Shown here: piece after piece, positions 49,564 to 62,586 of the stretch | Layout of the letters: every line of letters starts with the position of its first letter | How positions within the stretch are numbered: position 1 is the stretch's first letter | Source of the DNA: Oculina patagonica | Lineage: Eukaryota | DNA length: 64,000 nt | Direction of reading: 5' to 3' | NCBI RefSeq assembly: GCF_052425735.1 | Contig: NC_135764.1 | Span: 27,280,001 to 27,344,000, forward strand | Translations under genes and position numbers: made by a program | Notes under the pieces: generated by a model | Database searches by the model: none | What the model was told of the DNA's origin: nothing | What the model saw: the letters and a program-made list of their open reading frames with translations, nothing else

Positions 49564-52500
49564 TTAATCTATCTTCTCTATTTTATACTTGTTGTGTAAT
49601 TTATTAACACAATCGGAGAGAGTAATTGGTCTGTTATGCAGTTTGTTGGTATAAATGTAATAAGGCATATACAGCAAGGTATAATTAAGTTTTCTTATCA
49701 AAGTTTTGTTTTCAAGTGAAGAGGCGGGAGAAATACCGAATAACGTTTCTTTAACAGATGGATGGTGACTGGAGTTGTTCACGCTATTAAACCATTGAAT
49801 AACTCTCCTTTGAAAAGCTTTTGAAAATTGGCAGTGAATGAACGTATGCTCAATAGAGTCTTCATTTCCACAATATAAACAATCCTCGTCATCTTTAATA
49901 CCAAAACGGTGTAGCTCCTTCTTAGTGACTACAATTCTATGTAAGAACTTGTAGTGGAATTCTTTCAATTTATTTTCTTTACAAATTCGTTTTGTCAACT
50001 TAAAAAAGTGCCCCCAATCAGTGGAGTTTAAATTCAAGTTTTTGCTCCATTTCGTTGGGCCGGTAGGAAAAGAATGGTGTACCTTATTATTTAGTAGCCA
50101 GTAGAAATCTTTTGCCTTTGCTTTCTCTAAGTCAATTTCGATGTTTTCCTCTAGTTGGAACTTGGATTGATCTCCCAAATAACTTTCTTTTGGAAGTTTT
50201 CCAAAATTACGTGCCCTTGTTAGGAGCGTTTTTGGAATGGCATTTCTAACTTGATAAAATTTTAAAAAATTGGTTTTACAGTCATATTTCCTTTGGAACT
50301 GTTGAAAAGAAATTAGCTGTCCGTTTTCATTTAAAAGGTCCTGAATAGATATGATTCCTTTGGAAAACCATTCTTGAAGAAAGAATGGCTTTTCTCCTAT
50401 AAGGATAGCTTTGTTGTTAAAAAGAATTGTTTCCTGTCCTTGTTGGTAGTTGTACTTAGACTTTAGTTCCGAAAAAAAAGATAAAATGTCTTTGTAAAAG
50501 ATTGGCAACTTAGGATCAAAGTATTTTGCATCGTAATTACACCTAAGGAGGAAATTTAAACCTCCAAGCTTTGTAAAAAAATAATTTGGTACTGATTTCC
50601 AATTGCGTCTTTCAGGGTTAAGTAGTCTTGAGATCCAAGCTAGTCTTAACCCCTTTATCATAAGGTCAATATCCGTCATACGGATTCCACCTCGATCATA
50701 ATCCTGATAAATGCTTTCTCTTTTAATTTTGTCCTTTTTTTGGTTTCATAAGAAACTGAAAAGCTTACTTTTGATGGTGGATTGGACTTCGGTTGGAGTG
50801 TTTAAATTGGAAGCTGCATAGACTATTTGGGATAGCCCAAGAGATTTAATAATCAAAGCCTTTCCAAATAAGGTCAAGTTTCTTGCTTTCCATAAATCCA
50901 GTTTTGTTTGTAGTTTTTTGACTTTTAAATCGAAATTAAAATGTTTGTTCTTATTATCCTCATATGAGAAATATAGCCCTAGAATTTTGACAGGTTTGTT
51001 TACCCACTGTAATTGTAACGGTGTAATTTTGTTCTTTGACCACTTTCCCAACCATATCGCCTTAGTCTTTTTTACATTTAATTTTAAGCCTGAAATGACT
51101 CCAAAGTTATTGACTATGTTAAGAGACTTTTCTACTGAAATAATATCTGCACAAAATAAGTTAGTATCATCTGCAAATTTACTAATTTTAACTTCATTTC
51201 CAAATAAATTAATCCCATTGATTTCCGTTGTCTGGCGAAGCTTGTTAGATAATATTTCTGCGCTCAATATGAAAAGATATGGGGAAAGCGGGCAGCCTTG
51301 CCTAACCCCTCTTGTTGGTTTAATCCAATTGGTGGTAAAGCCATTATTCAATACCGTACTTTCGATATTTGTATAAAAAATTCTAATCCATCTTTTGACA
51401 TTATCGCCAAAGTTGAAGAGATCTAATACCTTCATTATGAATTGCCATTCCAAGGTGTCAAAGGCTTTCTTAAAGTCCAGTGATACCAGAATGCCCCCTT
51501 TCTTTTCCGACATGGTGTACTCCATTACATCATTTATCAGGCGTATATTTTCTCCAATATAACGACCTTTCATGAATCCGGTTTGATCGGAGTGAACTAA
51601 TTTTGGAAGTATTGATTCTATTCTTTTGGCTAACGCTTTAGATGCAATCTTATAATCAATGTTGAGTAAGGTTATAGGTCTCCAATTCTGAATGTCTAGT
51701 AGGTCAGAGTCTTCTTTAGGTATCAAAGTAATTACACCTCTTCGCTGTGAAATGGAGAGTTCTCCATCTTCAAAGGCTTGATTAAGGCTTTGGATCAGAT
51801 CAAGTCCTATTAAGTCAAAGAAATGTTTATAGAACTCAGCGGTGAATCCGTCTTCACCTGGAGATTTATTATCTTCAAAAGAATCTAGTATCCTTTTACA
51901 CTCCTCCAAGGTAAAAATCCCTTCCATTTGTTCCTGTTCTTCGTTACTAAGTTCTGGGATTTCAATTCCCCGAATAAATTCATCAAAAGCTTCTTGGGTC
52001 ACAGTTGTTTTAGAGCTGTAAAGGTCCTCATAGAATTTCTCTATTTGTTGTAAGATTTTAACCTCTTCTTTTATTGTTACGATATCGCTAGTTTGAAGTT
52101 CGGTTATTGTCTTCCTATTATAGTTTCGCTTTTCTAGATTAAAGAAATATTTAGTCGGCCGCTCTCCTTTCTCTACCCACCTGCATTTCGATCGGAAAAT
52201 TGCAGCGCGCCCTTTTTCTTCGTATATTGATTGAAACTCTGTTTTAAGGTTGTCGTACTCATTTAGCGTATTCTCTATATCTGATAAATTATCGCTGTTA
52301 CATATTTCATGGTCTAGCTCTTCCAGTCGCTTGGAGATTTGTACTTCCCGTTTTAAAGCAGCTCTCGCTTTTCTTTTAGCAAAAGAGATGGTGTTGTCAC
52401 GAATTTCCATTTTAATTAATTCCCATACTAGTCTTTTGTCTTTCAAAGATGCATACTTCTCACGTAATCGAGGGATAAGATCGCGGATTTTAAATATATA

Positions 52501-53295
52501 ACTGTCATCTTTCAGTAAGGTGTTATTGAACTTCCAGAATCCTGGTCCCCTTGGAGAATTGTTTGGTAATGAAAAACAAAGAAAAACTGTTTTATGATCT
52601 GGTGCTATTGAATTAGTAATTCCGATGCTTTTAACATGTTTTGTCAAGTTCTTTGCAATTAAAATAAAATCCAATCTAGATTTGACGTTTAATGCTTTGG
52701 ATACATATGAATATATATTCAAATTGGGGTGATGAACTCTTTGTATATCTATTAGATCAAAAATTTCCATTGTCATAAGAAGAAGCTGACTGAAATGTGA
52801 TGGTTTCCATGGTGTTCCGCCTTTTTTGTCTTTTTTTGATAGCGTGCAATTCCAGTCACCTCCAACAACAAGGTTTGTCAATTCCGATTTGTCGATAATA
52901 CAATTATTAAGCTCTTGTATAAATTCTAGTTGTTCGGATGGATTATTTGGTGCGTAAATATTACAGAATGACATTTTTAAACCATTGATATTGACTGTAA
53001 TGAGAGTAATTCTTCCTGTTTTGTCACTAAATGAGCAGTCTACCCTATAATTAGTCGATGGATCTATTAATATGCAAGTGCCTTTGCTATGTCGGGACCC
53101 ATGGGAAAAATACATTTTGCCTCCCCATTCGTTTTGCCAAGTTGTTTCGTCATTTAGTTCAGAATACGTTTCTTGGAGAAAATAAATACTTGCTTTCTGA
53201 TCTTTTAAATATGTAAAGATGCTCCTTCTTTTAGTTTGATCGCGTATTCCCCTTACGTTTAGTGAAATTACTTTACACCTTGAATTGTTTTGCAT
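49564..53295 (-). pseudogene. LINE ORF2 (APE endonuclease-RT-zinc knuckle) interrupted by one in-frame TGA at 50746-50748
   Basis: SLNVRG, LQET, GGDWN, SRLD, PDH (EN); PGEDG, WRPITLLN, LDFKKAFD, QGCPLSP, FADD (RT); CLYC..EH..HC. The two ORF halves are in the same frame: FL*NQKKDKIKR, where W is expected at the stop. Confidence 0.9.
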
Positions 53296-53494
53296 TTGAA
53301 TGTAATTGTAGAAAAAGAAATCACGCAAAAATAAAACCAAAAACAAACACTTATGAATACAAAAAGTAAACTAACGAAAAAATAAACGGAGATAAAGCTT
53401 TCGCTTCGCCTTCTCAGTCCTCTTAGAGACTTCCCTCGTGTTTAGACTATGTATGTAATAAATGTAATTCAACCTGCCAGCAACGCTTATCTAC

Positions 53495-54355
53495 TTAAAG
53501 TTCATCTAAATCATCTTCTGTATTAATTCGTAACGGCCTACCCTCAGGTGAAGTCTTGACAAAGATTTTCCCGTCTACAGTCCACACTCCTTTCAAAATT
53601 CCATCTTGCTTCATGTCGTTCGCCATTCGCACCAGGTTTCGGCGATGCGCCGTCAAATTTTCATTGATGAAGATTCGGTTCGAGGATGGTCTTGCCGTTG
53701 CCGGAGCACTTGGGAACAGCTGCGAACCGCTGATATTCTTTAGTTTAACTCGTTGCTTGTAGAGTGCCCTCTTCACCTTATGGCTTATAAATCTCACTAT
53801 GATAGGATTCGACTTTTTCCGTTTAATCCTGTGACAGATGTCGATATCTTCTCGCTTCACGTCGACGTTCAAGACCTGTGCGACCTTCAAAACCGCTTCC
53901 TCGTCGTCACAAATATTTTCTGGAATACCTTCAATCTCTAGAGAGTTTTTCCTTGTGTACTGTTCTAACGCGTCCATATTTTCATAAAGATCGTCATTTT
54001 CGACTTCAAGTTCTTTGACTCGATTCTTAGTCGCTTGCAATTCGGTTTTGAGCTGTGCGTTGTACTTGAGTGCTGCGTTCAATGATTCCTTAGCAGTTTT
54101 TAGTTCCGATTCCTGTTGCTTGAAAGAGGTTTTTAATTCTGCAACTTCCCTAGAAAGGTTGTTCATTGACTTCTGGATATCTTTTAGTAATGCGTGGATG
54201 TCCGCTAGGTCTGGTTGGACGTCCTCGCGCTCCTCTGAGTCTTCAGGCTCGAAATCGGCGGACGCCATGTTAACTCGTTTTGGTTCTGCAGTTTCGTCGT
54301 CCGTGGATCCTCTTTCACCACGTTTGTTCTTACGGCCTGACTTTACAGGAGGCAT
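53495..54355 (-). CDS. LINE ORF1 protein (coiled coil + RRM-like + FP25K-like C-terminal domain)
   Basis: Heptad region, LEQYTRKNSLEIEGIPE, IDICHR, PIIVRF, IFINENLT and VWTVDGKIFVK. Confidence 0.88.
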   Translation of the reverse strand: MPPVKSGRKNKRGERGSTDDETAEPKRVNMASADFEPEDSEEREDVQPDLADIHALLKDIQKSMNNLSREVAELKTSFKQQESELKTAKESLNAALKYNAQLKTELQATKNRVKELEVENDDLYENMDALEQYTRKNSLEIEGIPENICDDEEAVLKVAQVLNVDVKREDIDICHRIKRKKSNPIIVRFISHKVKRALYKQRVKLKNISGSQLFPSAPATARPSSNRIFINENLTAHRRNLVRMANDMKQDGILKGVWTVDGKIFVKTSPEGRPLRINTEDDLDEL

Positions 54356-55602
54356 ATTTTTTGAACAATTTTCATGCTGTAGATAGGTTTTTTCGTCTGA
54401 AATTGAGTAATTCGAGGGAAGAGGTCTCCCTTCACAGAAAAACGTGGCCGTCTTCGGCCAGTCCGCGCATGCTCTCTCTATTGCTTATGTCATTACAGTA
54501 TCCGCTCTATCAAGCTCCATGCAAAAGAACCGTACAAAACACGATACCAATCTAAGGTAAAGCGATCTTGTTTTAAGAATCTGATCGGTTTTTGGTGAAA
54601 TTATAAACTGGCGCAACGCAAATAGTCTGTTAACACTGAGAGTAAAACATTAAATGTAGTTATTGCGAATGTTAAAGATGAATTACAGTCCGTACTGCGC
54701 AATCTCGGCTGCAATGTTTATGTGAGCCTCACAAACAAAACAAAACTAAAAATTACGTGACAAACTTACCTGTTTCTTCATTATTAACGCCAGATATCCT
54801 TGCAGAACAAATAATAACAAGTAGAAGAACCTTGACGCTATTTCAAACTGACGTTTCAGCTCATCGGAAATTCTTGAACGATGCGAACTGTAATGGCGGA
54901 CTAAAAAACTTCATGTATGCTGTCAACGAAGTGTAACGTTTCAACGAATTCAAAACAAAAACGAAAACAAACCCCGAGTCTGCGCAATACGGACTGGAAA
55001 TCAGCTTTAAGACAGAATCTGATCAACACCCTTGTAACTCTACAAAAAAAGTGGAATACTTTGTGTACGTTGTCAACCGCAATCGAAAAAACCAGAAATG
55101 CGAAAAAGATTAAACTATATGTATTAACAATGGATTAAGAATGACTTGTTTTTCAAATGTAAACACCACGTCACAATTTTGACTAACACGATTTCTTTAA
55201 ATGACAAAAGCCAATTGAAATAGAAGTTTTGAAGTCAATGGCAGGTTGTACGACAGGCGGTCAAACAAGTGTAGAAAACTTGAATTATAAAATTAAACAT
55301 TTTCTCAGTCAGAGACAGTGACGAATGACAACTGAACAAACACTGAGCTTTTTACAAACAAAACTGAATCAAAGACCCGATAATAAATTCAGATCTCTCT
55401 TCGGATGCGGGTTAAATGACCGCATTTCTTTCGGTTAGAGGTTAGTGATTCCTTGTAGCGTATTGTTTGGTTTTATGAACTGGTACAAGAGAAAACAGCC
55501 ATTGGATTTCTGCTGTGTTTCCCAGAAAAACAAACCATGCATGCACACAAGCAATAACTGTAGCTTTCGGGAAACATAATGAAGATGTATTCATCTGCTT
55601 AG

Positions 55603-55972: not shown

Positions 55973-57184
55973 ATGGCAGCAAAAACAATCAAGCATGAAC
56001 TAACGTCTCCGGTAGAAGCCGCAGGTGTTGAAGTTGTTTACACCAACGATGTCTTTGAGGCGGAAAGCTGGCTAAGGGCTCACATCGTAGAACGTTCAGC
56101 TAGGGTTGTTGGCTTCGATATCGAGTGGAAACCACAGTTTGTCAGCAAGAAAAAAGGCGGTACCGAAAATGAGACTGCCGTTCTTCAGTTAGGAGTTGAA
56201 ACATCTTGCTTAGTTTTACATATTTATCACATGAGTGAGTTGCCAAAGTCGCTCATTTCAATTCTAGGAGATGGAAATATCTTGAAAGTTGGAGTTGAAA
56301 TTAAGGAAGACGCATCAAAACTTAAAAGGCATAGAGGTTTGGTCTGCGAAGGAATGGTTGACATCCGAGTCATGGCGATGAAGTCCCTCGGTATTCCAGC
56401 AAAAGCGCCAAAAATGCCAAAATTAGGACTGAAAGCACTGACGAAACGCTTTCTTGATATCGAGCTCGAAAAAACAAAGAAAGTAGCGACAAGCAACTGG
56501 GAAAACTTTCCTCTACAGTTAAGGCAGATTGAATACGCTGCTCTGGATGCTTGGGTCGGAGTGAATATTTACCAAGCAATTAAACGTCAAGAGACCGAGA
56601 GAACATTTTCTGACGGTCACTGCGCTGCTCTCGATGCTTCTACCGGAGCGAATATTAACCAAGGAATTAAACGCCAAGAGATCCAGAGACCGTTCTATCA
56701 AGATCATAGTCTACGTAGCCGGCGGGACTCGCCGGATGCTTGGCCCGGAGCGAATATTAACCAAGGAATTAAACGCCAAGAGATCAAGAGACCGTTCTAT
56801 CAAGATCATAGTCTACGTAGCCGGCGGGATTCGTGACGGAGTGGTGCTCCGGATGCTTGGGTCGGAGTGAATATTAACCAAGGAATTAAACGCCAAGAGA
56901 TCCAGAGACCGTTTTATCAAGATAACCACGCTGCTCTTGATGCTTCTGCTGGAGCGAATTTTCAACAAGCCCAAGAGATCCAGAGACCATTTTATCGAGA
57001 TCAAGAGGCCGTGCCATCACAGTCTCAGCAGTCTCCTGTATTATTATTATTATATATTTGGTTTATACTTATCATTTGTTTTTTTGCGTTCAGCCTCAAA
57101 TTATTTCTTTTTTGTTGTTGTTTTATGTGGTTGCTGTTGTTTACGGTGGATAGGCGAAATGACTTGACCACACGCCGCACTTAG
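55973..57184 (+). CDS. WRN/EXD2-type DEDDy 3'-5' exonuclease, copy A; stop at 56834-56836 precedes an in-frame repeat + hydrophobic tail
   Basis: ExoI GFDIEW, AVLQL, ExoII KVGVEIKEDA, GLKAL, SNWENFPL..QIEYAALDAW (ExoIII). Intronless. The 56867-57184 ORF is in the same frame. Confidence 0.85.
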
Positions 57185-57545
57185 ACAAGCGACTATCATT
57201 TCAGTATATTGAACATGTTGATACTCTTGTTTCTAATCTTATGGGCAAGCTATGCATGATCAGTAGAGTGAGACATCCCTCTTAGTTATTTTAAACATGG
57301 TACCCAGTACTTTCGTGGATGTAAACGCGCGTTGCGTGGATGTTCTCGTGCGTTTTACTGGAGAATGCAATGACTAAAACATAGCGGGCGGCGGAGTTGT
57401 AAAGTGACGATATCTAGATTTCCACATGGACCATGCGATGTCCAAAAAATGGAAGATTGATTGTTTGAAGAAAACGTGGAAATACTGGGTACCATGTCTA
57501 AAAACAACTTGAGAGGGGTTACCTTTGGAATAAGGTCTAGATAAT

Positions 57546-58420
57546 GAGGGGCTAACGGTTTAACCGTTAGCTTTTTTTACGGCTAACGGTTAATTTATTT
57601 CCATTACGATAAACAAAAGTTAAATATTAATTTACATTGTTTTTAAAAGTTAAAAATTAATTCCCATTAATAAAGAACATATTTTAGGTCTTAGGTCATT
57701 CTGGGACGATGAAGTGATCAATTCTGTTTTATTTATAATTGTAAAATTAATTAATAATTCACGAGGGTGCAAACCAATCCCAGCACAGTATTCAGATCAC
57801 ATGTACACAGCTGTAAACCCCCATACAAATCAATCAATAGAATTAACTTTTGATACAAACTCCTGCTCAGCTAATTAGTATTCATAAACTTTTGATACAG
57901 ATCTCTACTGATTCGCATAACAATACTTTGCATTCAATTTATTGTTTTCATTTCACAAGTACAATAAAATATTCGCGTCCGATCTGTATGGGCGTTTAAA
58001 ATGGCTCGCCTATCGGCTCGCCATTGTAACTGCCCATACAGATCTCCCGCTCATATTTTATTTACTACTTACTGATCGACTTTTTACGGTTAACATAATA
58101 GGCCTTATGCATGATAACGTCATAAGCTCAAAATTCACCACCAAGCCTCGTTTACGCAAATTATTCTCAACCTTTCTCCACCTTCATGTAGTTTTCACGT
58201 GGGTATTCTTTTCATCCTTGCTGCTTTGGAAATTCGTTCACGATAAGATTTACAAGTTAACACTTCGAAAGCGAGGCTTGGTAGTGAAACTAGCCAGTCT
58301 GACGTAAACCTGCATAAGGGCTATTTACGGCTAACGGTTAAACTTTTCAGTCCAATTTTAACGCCTAACGGTTAAATTTTTGGCCGTTATACGGCTTACG
58401 GTTAACCCCACAGAGACCCT
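57546..58420. mobile_element. GAGGG...CCCTC MITE with taacggtt subterminal repeats and a nested small TIR element (~58099-58323)
   Basis: Terminal inverted motifs and repeated ctaacggtta; inner ccttatgca / tgcataagg pair. Confidence 0.5.
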
Positions 58421-60751
58421 CCAATATGGGGGATTCACTCTCTTACCCTTATTCTCTCTTGATTGTAATGAGAGGTTGGAAACCAAAAGCTGCCCTTGGG
58501 AGACCTTCGAACCCAGTCCCTGAGTGAAACAATGACCTCACAACAGTTTTCGTCAATAAATTTATTCTTCTCGCGACTCGAATTTTATATTTACATGATA
58601 TTTAGCACTTTTTCTTGAAATATTTACAACCAGCTGGGTTTTAAGACTATTTATACAGCTGGCAACAAAAATTATTGCCCTTATTTTTGCTCCATAGACA
58701 GATTCGTGTATCACTTCCGACGTCAACATAAAAAATTCATCACAACATGTTTTCTAAGCAACAACACGCGCAAAAAATTAGGGGACAAATTTGGGTAATT
58801 TGCACACGTAAGAATTAAATCCGTCTTAAGAGAACTGTGTCACGAATTTTAGCCAAATTAAAACATAGGAAATAGCCATCAAATTCGGTGAACATAAAAA
58901 TAACCGCTTGAAACAGTGAAGGAACATTTCAATTACACAGTAAATACAAAAGAAGGTACGGATGACAAAAAGTGAAGAAGATTGAAACGGATTGCGATAT
59001 TGAAATACTGTTGGGCTGAATAGTAGTCGCATTGGGTTGTAACGAAGCTATTTTTTGACATTTAGACCAATAGAAGTAATTTCTTTGCAAACATTACGTT
59101 TCATAGCGAGTATTTGGCAAAACGTAATAAAATAAACTCAGCTCAGCCGTGACACAGTCCCTTTAATCTTCCTCTGTCATAACCAGTCCTGGTTTATTTT
59201 CGGGTTACTGTGGTGTTTTCTACCTGAGAAAACTATTATTAACTCAAGACATGCAACAAGAAATGAACTGAGGACAGTAAAGAAAATTTGTATGTTGACA
59301 GCAGGGTCTAAACGGTTAACCAATAAGAAAACATTCACGTAAAAAGAAAGGAAATAAATATATGAGCAACTTTACAAAGACACGATGAACAAAATCGAGA
59401 TTCACTTCCAGTTAACCGAATCAGAGTTTTTCTTATGCCAATCTGTAATCCTGGTCAAACGTCTTGGAATACTTCGCCTTTTTGCCAACAAATGGTCAAT
59501 GTGTTCATCACCCCCACTGTCCTCCCCCCTCCTACCCCCACTATCCGCAACACAATATTAGCTAGACCGATCAAATCTAGACCCAGCATTAGTGTGTTTG
59601 GACAGGGGAGAGGTCGGAACATTGAATAATAGGGAGTTAAAGCAAATCGATACAGCTGGCTCTTCAAGGGCTAGTGGAGGTGAATTTCTCAGAATATGAG
59701 ACACTTTGCATCTCAGTGGGTTATGTTTAGCCGTAGCGTAAAAATTTGACACCATGAGTCGGGAGGTTTTGCTGCAGTGGATGGCACGTCGGGCTTGGCG
59801 GACCACCATGACGCTCTCTCCCCAAACCTCTTCAGCCACTGTAGCCGTAGATACGCCAAGCCGTGGCGATTTGCTTCTTCCCACATCAAAACAACAGCAA
59901 CGAACAACGGCGAGAGAACTGGACGCCAGCGCAAAACAGAAGAAGCAAGAGGATAGGGGGGGGGGGGGGATTTTTTTCGCTCGCTTTGCTCGCTTCCCGG
60001 CCCCCCTCCCCGAGCGCTCACTTCGTTTGCTTTTTCCTTGAAACATCGAGAGGCTGTGGACAGTCTATTTTGGTCAGGATTATAGATTCTTTGTACATAT
60101 TAACTTAAATATGCTATAAATTAGATTAACTGATGGACACCTCTGCTTGGCTGTCAATCACTGTCACTCCCAGATTCGCTTAGCTGAAGGTCTTCACCTG
60201 TAGACAAGAAAACACAGTGATTAGGATTCACTTTCTCCTTACAACATCGATACATAACCAAGCCTGTGGAGAATGAGAATTCGAAAGATAATCACCTGAA
60301 AGGGAAATTACCTTATAATGATATAGGAAAATCTCATTTGCATTTACTTTCAACACACTTAATTAATATCCGCGACCACAAAAACTAGTTTCGTCAGAAG
60401 ACCTCGTTATACTTTCTTGGTTTCGGCGAACAGAATTTCACAAAAGGGAAATTACCTTGATCGCTTTAAAAATTCTCATAACTAGAACTATAACAGTGTA
60501 TTCACACAACAAAAAACAGTCGTGAGGAAAGTTTAGGAGAATTCGAAGGTTACCGTTTAGAGAAGTTGTCACTTGAGTGTCGAAAGTAATTTGCAGTTGC
60601 TTCAGTTTTGCATTACTACGCTTAGTAATTGGTTTAAAAATTTCGCGCTTTGTGTACACTGTCTTTTTTTAAACAACCACAATCAAAGAAAGTAGAAATG
60701 CCAAAAAAATTGTGTGTGCTAACGATGGATTAAGAATAACTTGTTTTTTTT

Positions 60752-60782
<31 letters not shown>

Positions 60783-61266
60783 GTGAACACCACATCACAA
60801 TTCTGACTAACACGATTCCTTTAAAGGACAATAGCCAGTTGAAATGGAAGTTCTAAAGTCAATAGCACATTGTACGACAGGCCGTCAAACAAGTGTTAGA
60901 AAACTCGAATTGTTAAATCCAACATTTACTTAGTCTGAGACAATGACAAATAACAACTGACCAAACACTAAGCTCTGTACAAGCAAAACTGAAACAATGA
61001 CCCGATAATACATTCAGATCTCTCTCCGGATGCGGGTTAAATGACCGCCTTTTTTTGGTTAGAGATTAGTGATTCCTTGTAGCGTATTGTTTGGTCTTGT
61101 GAACTGGTACACGAGAAAACAACCATAGGTCTTCTGTAAATTATTAACTGTGCACGGAATCAGATGAAGATTCAAGACAAAGGTGCTACTTCAGTTGTCT
61201 GGCTAAACACCGCTCGGTAAAATAATTAACGAGCGTTCCACTACAGTAAATTGCTTGTTTATAGCG

Positions 61267-62586
61267 ATGTCTGATACCCAAGCAAGGCGACGAAGCCAAA
61301 CCGCAGTAGACGCCTCGGATAATGAACACTACAGAGGAGAAAATACCTCATCGCCGGGTTGGACAACCTCCTATGAGTACAGTGAAGACTCTAGTCGCAA
61401 AACACGGCTATTATCAACCGTTCCATTGTCACGCCGGAACGAAGATCACTGCAACTCTAGATCGTGTGGCTATGTTAAAAATGGTTCTTATCCTAAGACT
61501 CGAGTTCCCTTCTCACTTTGGGAAGAAGACTGTCGTACGGGCCTTCCATTATGGGTTAGAGAAAAACCTTTTGGCTCATCCTATGTGAATCAAGCGCCCC
61601 TTCGTGAGAGACAAAGCGAAAGCCGTCGAACATGCTTCGAGAGCTCTAACGAAAACACTTCACCGAGACGTGTACATGATGGACCAAGGCAAGCGCGTTC
61701 GCAGCTCCTTTTTCAAGACGTAAGGGCCAAAACTACCAACGACCGGATGGAAAACAAAAATCAACGATCTGATGTACCCGAAGAACGCCAGCTTTTGAGA
61801 AAAACACCCCGTTGTGTCAGGAGAACAGCAACGATGAGACATGAACTAGCAGATCCACCCGAAGCTATAGGTGTCAAGGTCCTTTACACCAACGATTTAC
61901 GTGAAGGAGAAAGGTGGCTGAGGAAACACATCGTGGAACGTTCAGCAAGGGCTGTTGGCTTTGACATGGAGTGGAAACCACAGTTCGACAGCAAGAAAAA
62001 TGGCGGTAGCGAAAATGAAACTGCCGTTCTTCAGTTAGGAGTTGAAACATCTTGCTTGGTGTTGCATGTTTATCACATGGGCGAGCTTCCTAAGTCGCTT
62101 TCGTCAATTCTAATAGACGAAAATATCTTGAAAGTTGGAAGCGACATTCAGCGAGACGCCTTAAAGATCGAACGCGATCGAGATTTGGTCTGCAAAGGAT
62201 TGGTCGACACCCAAGAGATGGCAAAGTCTTTCGGTCTACAGAAAGTAGGACTGAAAGCTCTAGCGAAACACTTTCTTGGTGTGGAGCTCGAGGACATGTG
62301 GTTTACCGACTGGGAGCACTTTCCTCTAGAGCTAAACGAGGTTGAATACGCTGCTCTTGATGCATGGGTTGGATTGAAAGTTTTCCAAGAAATGAAACGG
62401 CAACTCAGTTGTATGCAAGAACGAGATACGACAGCAGAAGCTCTTGATCAAGATCATTACATAGAATCTTTAAATGCATACAATCAAGAGATAGAAACAG
62501 AAACTTCTTTTGTCTATCATGTAGGGTTCATTTTTATTATTGTCTGTTTTTTGTTCCTTGCTTGTCGCTGCTTTGCTTTCCATTGA
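61267..62586 (+). CDS. WRN/EXD2-type DEDDy 3'-5' exonuclease, copy B, with disordered S/R-rich N-terminus and C-terminal TM helix
   Basis: GFDMEW, KVGSDIQRDA and EYAALDAW; ends VGFIFIIVCFLFLACRCFAFH. Intronless; probable ATG at 61267. Confidence 0.88.
   Translation: MSDTQARRRSQTAVDASDNEHYRGENTSSPGWTTSYEYSEDSSRKTRLLSTVPLSRRNEDHCNSRSCGYVKNGSYPKTRVPFSLWEEDCRTGLPLWVREKPFGSSYVNQAPLRERQSESRRTCFESSNENTSPRRVHDGPRQARSQLLFQDVRAKTTNDRMENKNQRSDVPEERQLLRKTPRCVRRTATMRHELADPPEAIGVKVLYTNDLREGERWLRKHIVERSARAVGFDMEWKPQFDSKKNGGSENETAVLQLGVETSCLVLHVYHMGELPKSLSSILIDENILKVGSDIQRDALKIERDRDLVCKGLVDTQEMAKSFGLQKVGLKALAKHFLGVELEDMWFTDWEHFPLELNEVEYAALDAWVGLKVFQEMKRQLSCMQERDTTAEALDQDHYIESLNAYNQEIETETSFVYHVGFIFIIVCFLFLACRCFAFH

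Follow-up and report, generated by a model that had tools for sequence, protein, structure and literature searches.

Single-exon WRN/WEX-like exonuclease genes with putative C-terminal membrane anchors in the stony coral Oculina patagonica

The known exonucleases of the WRN/WEX type are soluble and occur in the nucleus or the cytosol. EXD2 is a DEDDy exonuclease that is tethered at the mitochondrial outer membrane by an N-terminal helix. TREX1 is a cytosol-facing 3'-5' exonuclease held at the membrane by a C-terminal hydrophobic segment. PNLDC1, the piRNA trimmer, is another 3'-5' exonuclease; it has its transmembrane helix at the C-terminus and belongs to the CAF1/PARN family, not to PF01612. 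In mammals, such membrane placement of an exonuclease is linked to the control of innate immunity (TREX1) and the maturation of piRNAs (PNLDC1). Then, could an exonuclease of the WRN/WEX type be held at a membrane by its C-terminus? Two tandem genes of the coral Oculina patagonica bear on this question.

The window analysed here is a stretch of 64,000 nucleotides (contig NC_135764.1, positions 27,280,001 to 27,344,000; coordinates below count from its first letter, and the features described lie on the forward strand unless stated otherwise). Both open reading frames that the first-pass annotation had described were located at the same positions. Copy A (55973..56836) encodes 287 aa up to an in-frame stop and is identical to a database protein (P0025) recorded as the window's own. 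Copy B has an open frame of 61255-62586, within which an ATG at 61267, conserved in the related sequences L002 and L010, starts a coding region of 439 aa (61267..62586). The two proteins are 61% identical across 217 aa (E 1e-89), and both match the PF01612 profile far above its curated cut-off of 23.6 bits, that is, with 79.1 bits (E 4.6e-22) for the 3'-5' exonuclease domain of copy A (56096..56587, residues 42-205) and 74.4 bits (E 1.2e-20) for that of copy B (61942..62406). Copies A and B and the five other copies in the genome all have the D and E of motif I, the D of motif II and the Y and D of motif III, so that the DEDDy set is complete in both paralogues, as had been claimed. Across the 126 family domains, for which motif III served as a selection criterion, the motif I and motif II residues are kept in 125 or 126. 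Motif III of the coral proteins reads YAALDAW, with a tyrosine and not the histidine of DEDDh enzymes.

The nearest solved structures by sequence are the WRN exonuclease domains 2e6l and 2fbt (E 1e-18), and the nearest by fold is the WRN exonuclease 2fbv (E 1e-14, rmsd about 2 Å), after which the fold search lists Arabidopsis WEX, in fourth place, and Drosophila WRNexo. EXD2 gives a far weaker sequence match (E 4e-7), and EXD2, RRP6, Mut-7 and RNase D are all weaker matches than WRN and WEX. A feature search gave a nearest cluster named 'Werner Syndrome-like exonuclease'. Consequently, of the earlier label 'WRN/EXD2-like', the WRN part is retained and the EXD2 part is dropped. Copies A and B are WRN-exo/plant-WEX-like DEDDy exonucleases, and they are not kin of TREX1 or PNLDC1. 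RecQ helicase domains are absent from both, since Pfam gives PF01612 alone and the ORFs stop 50-100 residues past the domain; lacking the RecQ helicase part, the coral proteins are not WRN orthologues.

At least seven single-exon copies are present in the O. patagonica genome, with a third copy of the tandem array located immediately beyond the end of the window. The order of this trio, namely an A-like gene with a tail-anchor, a B-like gene with a tail-anchor and a gene with a basic tail, is also found in syntenic arrangement in a contig of another coral. The tail-anchor layout, defined as a hydrophobic 19-residue window ending near the C-terminus together with the absence of an N-terminal hydrophobic segment, occurs in 41 of the 137 family and outgroup sequences, spanning at least three named genera, Orbicella and Porites among them. 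The window ends 1-13 residues (median 4) before the C-terminus in these 41 members, and hydropathy revealed no N-terminal hydrophobic segment in any of them, the maximum Kyte-Doolittle mean over 19 residues (KD19) being 1.2 there. The tails of the Oculina copy L005, of Orbicella faveolata XP_020606340.1 and of two further corals can be aligned, and in the Porites group the tail hardly varies, in contrast to the linker that precedes it. The lineage-specific DEDDy family that had been proposed is thus recovered as a stony-coral family with C-terminal hydrophobic tails kept in homologues.

Other family members have basic tails or dsRNA-type zinc fingers. The zinc-finger forms are basal in the tree, and the tail-anchor and basic-tail forms of the Oculina genome all fall in one clade with 99% support. 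Tail type requires a minimum of only six state changes on the 126-row tree, and tail-anchor-like tails also arose separately within zinc-finger clades (P0070/P0074, P0122, P0131). One named octocoral, known here from protein only, belongs to the zinc-finger group. Green-algal proteins with C-terminal hydrophobic hits (P0190, P0211, P0253, P0263) were considered as tail-anchored relatives and rejected, because they are multi-pass membrane-domain fusions; their membrane domain bears a motif resembling the CPBP-protease motif.

Copy B ends in VGFIFIIVCFLFLACRCFAFH, which contains a 20-residue hydrophobic segment with a KD19 of 2.62. This segment (62521..62583; VGFIFIIVCFLFLACRCFAF, then H) stops one residue short of the C-terminus and is modelled by AF2 as a helix with pLDDT > 90. 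It is the sole segment of copy B with KD19 above 1.6, in line with the hydrophobic C-terminal segment first reported, and hydropathy found no second window of at least 1.6 in either A or B. In the AF2 model, the C-terminal helix comprises residues 204-249, with pLDDT of 91-95 over the last 20 residues. Copy B has the geometry of the tail-anchored topological class, that is, one hydrophobic helix some 20 residues long, placed no more than about 30 residues from the C-terminus, where the transmembrane call rests on Kyte-Doolittle hydropathy and the AF2 model, both indirect measures. Relative to the near-copy L002 and the relative L010, the tail of copy B carries a 1-nt frameshift.

The N-terminal extension of copy B contains an in-frame segment of 504 nt (61302..61805), which the related coral contig L010 does not have. 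An intron was considered here and rejected: the segment is in frame and homologous to the coding extension of L003, and it is an indel, since it lacks GT..AG ends and has AAAC microhomology. The block upstream of copy B (60780..61266) is the counterpart of the non-coding block upstream of copy A (55048..55512), which is 81-87% identical to the blocks upstream of B and L010 and thereby exceeds the identity of the coding regions (73%). Read depth over the block of copy B is low-copy, and therefore it is not a dispersed repeat. The database proteins recovered include A, L003, L005 and L002, but not copy B.

In copy A, five in-phase tandem units of 87-117 nt (56546..57023) repeat the last helix of the exonuclease domain (DAWxGxNIxQxIKRQE...); Tandem Repeats Finder reports the array as 56643-56923 with a period of 102. 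The in-frame TGA (56834..56836) is part of an insert of 15 nt within repeat unit 3, and its location inside a tandem duplication of the final exonuclease-domain helix adds to the earlier reading. It is the sole in-frame stop before a same-frame continuation (56837..57184) of 115 codons and a TAG (57182-57184). Beyond the TGA, where a hydrophobic segment had been reported, such a segment is indeed found at about 57038-57142; it includes VLLLLYIWFILIICFFAFSLKLFLFCCCFMWLLLF, with a KD19 of 2.83. The lead-in motif SQSQQSPV of this tail is similar to S(S/P)QSP.V, the motif that leads into the tail in a 16-row subclade (the copy A-like tail group, with copy A, L005 and the Orbicella protein). Copy A has the tail-anchor layout only when it is read past the TGA.

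None of the sequencing runs listed as containing the stretch is on record as RNA. The reads of X15 and of the 'RNA?'-flagged runs X1-X3 extend over intergenic DNA and repeats as those of DNA runs do, and no read joints across the ORFs were seen in these runs, which behave like DNA. Exact-protein look-ups of A and B matched no outside contigs. Two Orbicella contig ends common to two studies (L014 positions 3690 and 5420) were considered as transcript ends and rejected, as they carry no poly-A or signal and could be explained by unitig break points.

The exonuclease domain is under purifying selection, with dN/dS of 0.13-0.28 among the relatives in the copy A-like group and 0.29-0.49 among the Oculina paralogues. 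For the tail, dN/dS is about 0.9-1.3 over 30 codons and reaches 1.0-3.9 in the B group. With values of about 1, there is no codon-level purifying selection on the tail residues, only selection on their hydrophobic character. Base composition gives a complementary view. T content reaches 51-63% only in the 57 nt coding for the hydrophobic stretch and is 22-35% on either side; in each of nine genes, codon position 2 has the largest T fraction of that stretch (0.63-0.79), and the flanking 3'UTR has normal composition. Since the T-richness is confined to 57 nt and peaks at codon position 2, the hydrophobic tail is very probably translated. The first-pass annotation had staked its proposal in part on conservation of the tails in homologues, and the proposal stands on this point, because the tails are conserved (41 sequences, and a minimum of only six state changes) and the T-rich patch is both confined and phased to codon position 2.

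We consider it probable that A and B belong to a group of small single-exon WRN-exo/WEX-type exonucleases that has expanded in stony corals and carries an exchangeable C-terminal module, tail-anchored forms included. Ahead of this module, each protein would have an exonuclease domain with intact catalytic residues, preceded by an N-terminal extension that evolves fast and is probably disordered. In older branches the module would be a set of C2H2/zf-met (dsRNA-type) zinc fingers; one well-supported stony-coral clade would have, in their place, either a tail anchor in the form of one transmembrane helix at the C-terminus or a tail that is basic and NLS-like. From the sequences we infer that the tail-anchored members may enter the membrane of the ER or of some other organelle after translation, leaving the nuclease on the cytosolic side, and that the membrane-held nucleases would trim the 3' ends of nucleic acids. 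The ER is favoured for copy B because of its high tail hydrophobicity and near-neutral end. Copy B would then be an intact tail-anchored member, whose tail has been remodelled by the frameshift yet stays hydrophobic. Copy A, as it appears in the present assembly, would be cut off by the TGA ahead of a still-open ancestral tail. It may be a soluble form that arose by recent truncation, or an allele that is decaying or polymorphic.

Could the tails instead be by-products of zinc-finger loss, frameshift or stop loss, the proteins being soluble nucleases or the tail a degradation signal? Read-through tails tend toward hydrophobicity. A tail dN/dS of about 1, the hydrophobic peptide that copy B still encodes after its frameshift and the separate rise of similar tails inside zinc-finger clades would all suit such an origin, as would the reported clearance of 3'UTR read-through proteins in metazoans via a BAG6-involving pathway (PMC10364623). 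However, the phased T-rich patch with normal 3'UTR around it is hard to reconcile with by-products, and the 41 sequences, from three or more named genera, keep the position and character of the tail with few changes of state on the tree. In the Porites group the tail is better conserved than the linker. In addition, simulations of unconstrained substitution gave an equally hydrophobic open frame in 0.1-28% per pair, and a new stop arose in the tail with a chance of 23-58% per pair. By-product tails are distinctly unlikely in our view. It is also rather unlikely that A is a pseudogene and B a gene under relaxed constraint, with the functional members elsewhere (e.g., L005, L003 or the zinc-finger paralogues). 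In copy A the TGA does fall within an indel-bearing repeat array; for copy B, the tail is frameshifted, the exonuclease-domain dN/dS against L002 and L010 is a relaxed 0.42-0.49, and there is no entry among the annotated proteins recovered. Nevertheless, all catalytic residues are kept and the frames are long and open in both copies; copy A stays open for 115 codons past its stop, across a T-rich stretch prone to stops, its exonuclease-domain dN/dS against L005 and L003 (0.32-0.36) is similar to that of other copies, and its 287-aa product still holds the complete domain.

The single-exon state may also be explained by a mobile element or virus that carries the family or from which it was recently derived, through retroposition or horizontal transfer. 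All seven copies have single-exon coding regions, a LINE (endonuclease, reverse transcriptase, zf-RVT) is located on the opposite strand, 1.6 kb upstream of A, and the intergenic DNA between A and B is rich in high-copy repeats. However, the copies are few, reads cover the genes at single-copy depth, the trio gene order is conserved in another coral, and besides the upstream block of about 450 bp the copies share no mobile-element-like flank. The nearest outside relatives are ordinary WEX/WRNexo proteins of plants, algae and dipteran insects. Moreover, a single-exon coding region was found in every family member examined at the DNA level, including the basal zinc-finger paralogues, and consequently any retroposition would be ancient. 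The term 'intronless' used before is thus correct for the coding regions, which are its scope, while the retroposition or horizontal origin proposed with it is not borne out; we regard a mobile-element origin as very improbable.

Returning to the stony-coral expansion with exchangeable C-terminal modules, a broader and rather doubtful extension can be sketched. In stony corals, an ancestral WEX-like exonuclease may have had its dsRNA-type zinc fingers swapped for a tail anchor or a basic nuclear tail, giving a small and rapidly evolving set of compartment-specific 3'-5' nucleases, of which the membrane forms might serve cytosolic nucleic-acid surveillance or small-RNA trimming on the ER or mitochondria, as an independent DEDDy counterpart of TREX1 and PNLDC1. 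The tail-anchor clade also holds sister genes with nuclear-type basic tails, and there are older relatives with dsRNA-type zinc fingers; with localisation as predicted, the family would illustrate the swap of a localisation module at the 3' end of a single-exon gene. Predicted candidates for antiviral, transposon or small-RNA roles are Orbicella XP_020606340.1, Porites lutea XP_073236057.1 and the Oculina copies B and L005.

How, then, do the coral proteins compare with the known systems? They share the DEDDy PF01612 fold with the WRN exonuclease, Arabidopsis WEX (Q84LH3) and Drosophila WRNexo, which are the best matches in sequence and fold, and like WEX and WRNexo they are small stand-alone exonucleases, unlike WRN with its RecQ helicase part. 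In contrast to WEX and WRNexo, for which to our knowledge none of these has been described, they add a C-terminal transmembrane-like tail, a basic tail or zinc fingers. A literature search for a tail-anchored WRN/WEX-like exonuclease or for coral reports of the family returned nothing relevant, and the combination of this enzyme type with a putative membrane anchor appears not to have been described before. EXD2 is similar in being a DEDDy enzyme on a membrane, a location that is predicted for the coral proteins; however, they have no counterpart of its N-terminal helix, and solved EXD2 chains superpose poorly on the coral domain. The Pfam search of A and B gave no match to CAF1/PARN, the family of PNLDC1. 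The predicted topology of the coral proteins is analogous to that of TREX1, whereas TREX1 is a DEDDh enzyme of another family, and the coral proteins have Y in motif III and PF01612 as their only Pfam domain. The resemblance to TREX1 would therefore be convergent at most, and, if the prediction is right, a conserved and expanded coral clade would have taken a second, independent route to fixing a 3'-5' exonuclease at a membrane, on its cytosolic side.

Two neighbouring genes on the plus strand of the window, copy A and copy B, encode proteins with the DEDDy 3'-5' exonuclease domain. Copy A is an open reading frame of 287 aa (55973-56836) matching PF01612 (DNA_pol_A_exo1) with an E-value of 4.6e-22, and copy B occupies an open frame at 61255-62586 (PF01612, E 1.2e-20), both as placed by the first-pass annotation. 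The start of copy B is likely the ATG at 61267, giving a product of 439 aa, since the near-copy L002 and the related coral contig L010 keep this ATG together with the residues downstream of it. The two proteins share 61% identity across 217 residues, and the catalytic residues D-x-E, D and Y-x3-D, previously claimed for both, are indeed found in A and B, as well as in five other Oculina copies and essentially all family members. The database searches retrieved the proteins of A, L003, L005 and L002 (‘3'-5' exonuclease-like’, 443 aa) but not that of copy B (61267-62586), which may be unannotated or differently modelled in public annotation.

The Oculina genome (529 Mb) contains at least seven copies of the family, each with a single coding exon, in line with the description of A and B as tandem and intronless; its other PF01612 genes are split into exons. 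A third tandem paralogue, L003 (431 aa), is located just beyond the end of the window (G000:C7:27345557-27346852; L003 811-2106); its long N-terminal extension contains an internal duplication, and at its C-terminus there is a short basic tail (KRGRK) rather than a hydrophobic segment. L002, which is 95% identical to B and lies on a small contig, is likely a haplotig, while L005, on another chromosome, has a hydrophobic tail. The adjacent long paralogues L006 and L007 (G000:C7:32.325-32.332 Mb; a 769-aa ORF and an open frame of ~946 aa) carry the same exonuclease domain followed by several C-terminal zinc fingers, which match C2H2, zf-met and JAZ-type models.

The C-terminal end of copy B, VGFIFIIVCFLFLACRCFAFH, reaches a Kyte-Doolittle 19-residue mean (KD19) of 2.62, with all other segments of B at or below 1.6; relative to L002 and L010 it is shifted in frame by 1 nt and has stayed hydrophobic. 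In copy A, the frame is closed by a single in-frame TGA (56834-56836), then reopens for 115 codons up to a TAG (57182-57184) and encodes a Cys-rich hydrophobic stretch of ~35 residues (KD19 2.83). The hydrophobic segments reported earlier are thus present in both copies, in A beyond the stop. In the linker of copy A (56546-57023), the last helix of the exonuclease domain (DAWxGxNIxQxIKRQE...) occurs five times in tandem, all in phase, compared with once in the close relatives P0065 and P0083, and the TGA sits within a 15-nt insert of repeat unit 3. The tails of A's closest relatives are preceded by S(S/P)QSP.V, and the SQSQQSPV ahead of A's tail is similar, so the tail is ancestral and the stop secondary. 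In this assembly, copy A is cut off before its tail, and copy B is an intact member.

Could such tails serve as anchors? In 41 sequences, a hydrophobic 19-residue window ends 1-13 residues (median 4) from the C-terminus, and an N-terminal hydrophobic segment was found in none of them (0/41). The tails can be aligned residue by residue between L005, Orbicella and two other corals. T-richness (51-63% T) is limited to the 57 nt coding for the hydrophobic stretch, with 22-35% T on both flanks, and T is highest at codon position 2 in 9/9 genes, a pattern that points to a translated hydrophobic segment rather than an accidentally read T-rich UTR. When unconstrained substitution was simulated, a stop arose in 23-58% of trials per pair, and an open, equally hydrophobic segment in just 0.1-28%. 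Two findings count against the anchor reading: the tail dN/dS is ~1, so that selection, if acting, would be on hydrophobic character rather than residue identity, and hydrophobic tails arose a few further times within zinc-finger clades. Taken together, the coral WRN/WEX-like exonucleases with tail-anchor-like ends form a conserved family, whose membrane insertion, topology, substrate and role we infer. The lineage-specific tail-anchored family proposed in the first-pass annotation is partly upheld in this form, with B as an intact member and A stopping before its tail in this assembly. No prior account of such a family was found in the literature.

The database searches yielded ~130 relatives, including those of Orbicella faveolata (‘Werner Syndrome-like exonuclease’), Porites lutea, Porites evermanni, Montipora, Acropora and the octocoral Dendronephthya. 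On a tree of 126 rows, the zinc-finger forms (the architecture of L006 and L007) are basal, and a single 74-row clade (support 99%) takes in every tail-anchor and basic-tail form, A, B, L003 and L005 among them. With at least six changes of tail type on this tree, tail type is largely inherited. For the exonuclease domain, relatives of the copy A-like group (with copy A, L005 and the Orbicella protein) give a dN/dS of 0.13-0.28 and the Oculina paralogues one of 0.29-0.49; with this range of 0.13-0.49, the enzymes are maintained. The order of A-like, B-like and basic-tail genes, all on the same strand, is repeated on another coral's contig. An EAF-family gene model on the other strand spans the Orbicella copy A-like member (L014; MZGG01000959.1, 219850-228716), which may sit inside one of that gene's introns.

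A horizontal origin had also been proposed. The exhaustive profile search gave no hint of it: beneath the coral group there is a score gap, followed by ordinary plant, algal, picozoan and dipteran WEX/WRNexo proteins. As for retroposition, a non-LTR (LINE) retrotransposon is located 1.6 kb upstream of copy A on the minus strand (49564-54355), with a coiled-coil ORF1-like ORF (53495-54355), an ORF with endonuclease and reverse transcriptase (50746-53346) and a zf-RVT ORF (49564-50679); it provides only context for this idea, and the single-exon family is an old one. Read depth over the genes is single-copy (~10-35), so they are not repeats themselves; between A and B, the depth climbs to thousands in each of the four runs, all of which behaved like DNA, and the intergenic stretches at 57420-58420, 58820-59220, 59820-60220 and 60420-60820 are high-copy dispersed repeats. 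A (TG)17 microsatellite is present at 60752-60785. Upstream of both genes lies a non-coding block of ~450 bp (55048-55512 and 60780-61266), whose identity between A and B (87%) exceeds that of the coding regions (73%) and is 81-84% to the related coral's contig. The block may act as a promoter or leader common to both copies, or result from gene conversion.

Concerning enzyme type, the WRN exonuclease domains of mouse (E 1e-18) and human (7e-18) are the nearest solved structures by sequence, followed by EXD2 (4e-7), with RRP6 and Mut-7 weaker still. By fold, the AF2 model of B (pLDDT 88.8) fits the WRN exonuclease at ~2 A (E 1e-14), with Arabidopsis WEX and Drosophila WRNexo ranking next. The earlier label ‘WRN/EXD2-like’ is consequently retained in its WRN half; identity with EXD2 is rejected on the weaker match. 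A and B have no helicase part, and they are not WRN orthologues. Kinship with TREX1 or PNLDC1 (DEDDh or CAF1 enzymes) is likewise rejected in favour of a WEX/WRNexo-like type. By sequence and model, A and B are stand-alone WEX/WRNexo-like proteins. Two green-algal proteins, P0253 (Chloropicon mariensis) and P0263 (MMETSP transcript), join a WEX-like exonuclease domain to a multi-pass membrane domain, which has an EExxxR-type motif reminiscent of CPBP proteases; this fusion is another, unrelated route of the nuclease type into the membrane.
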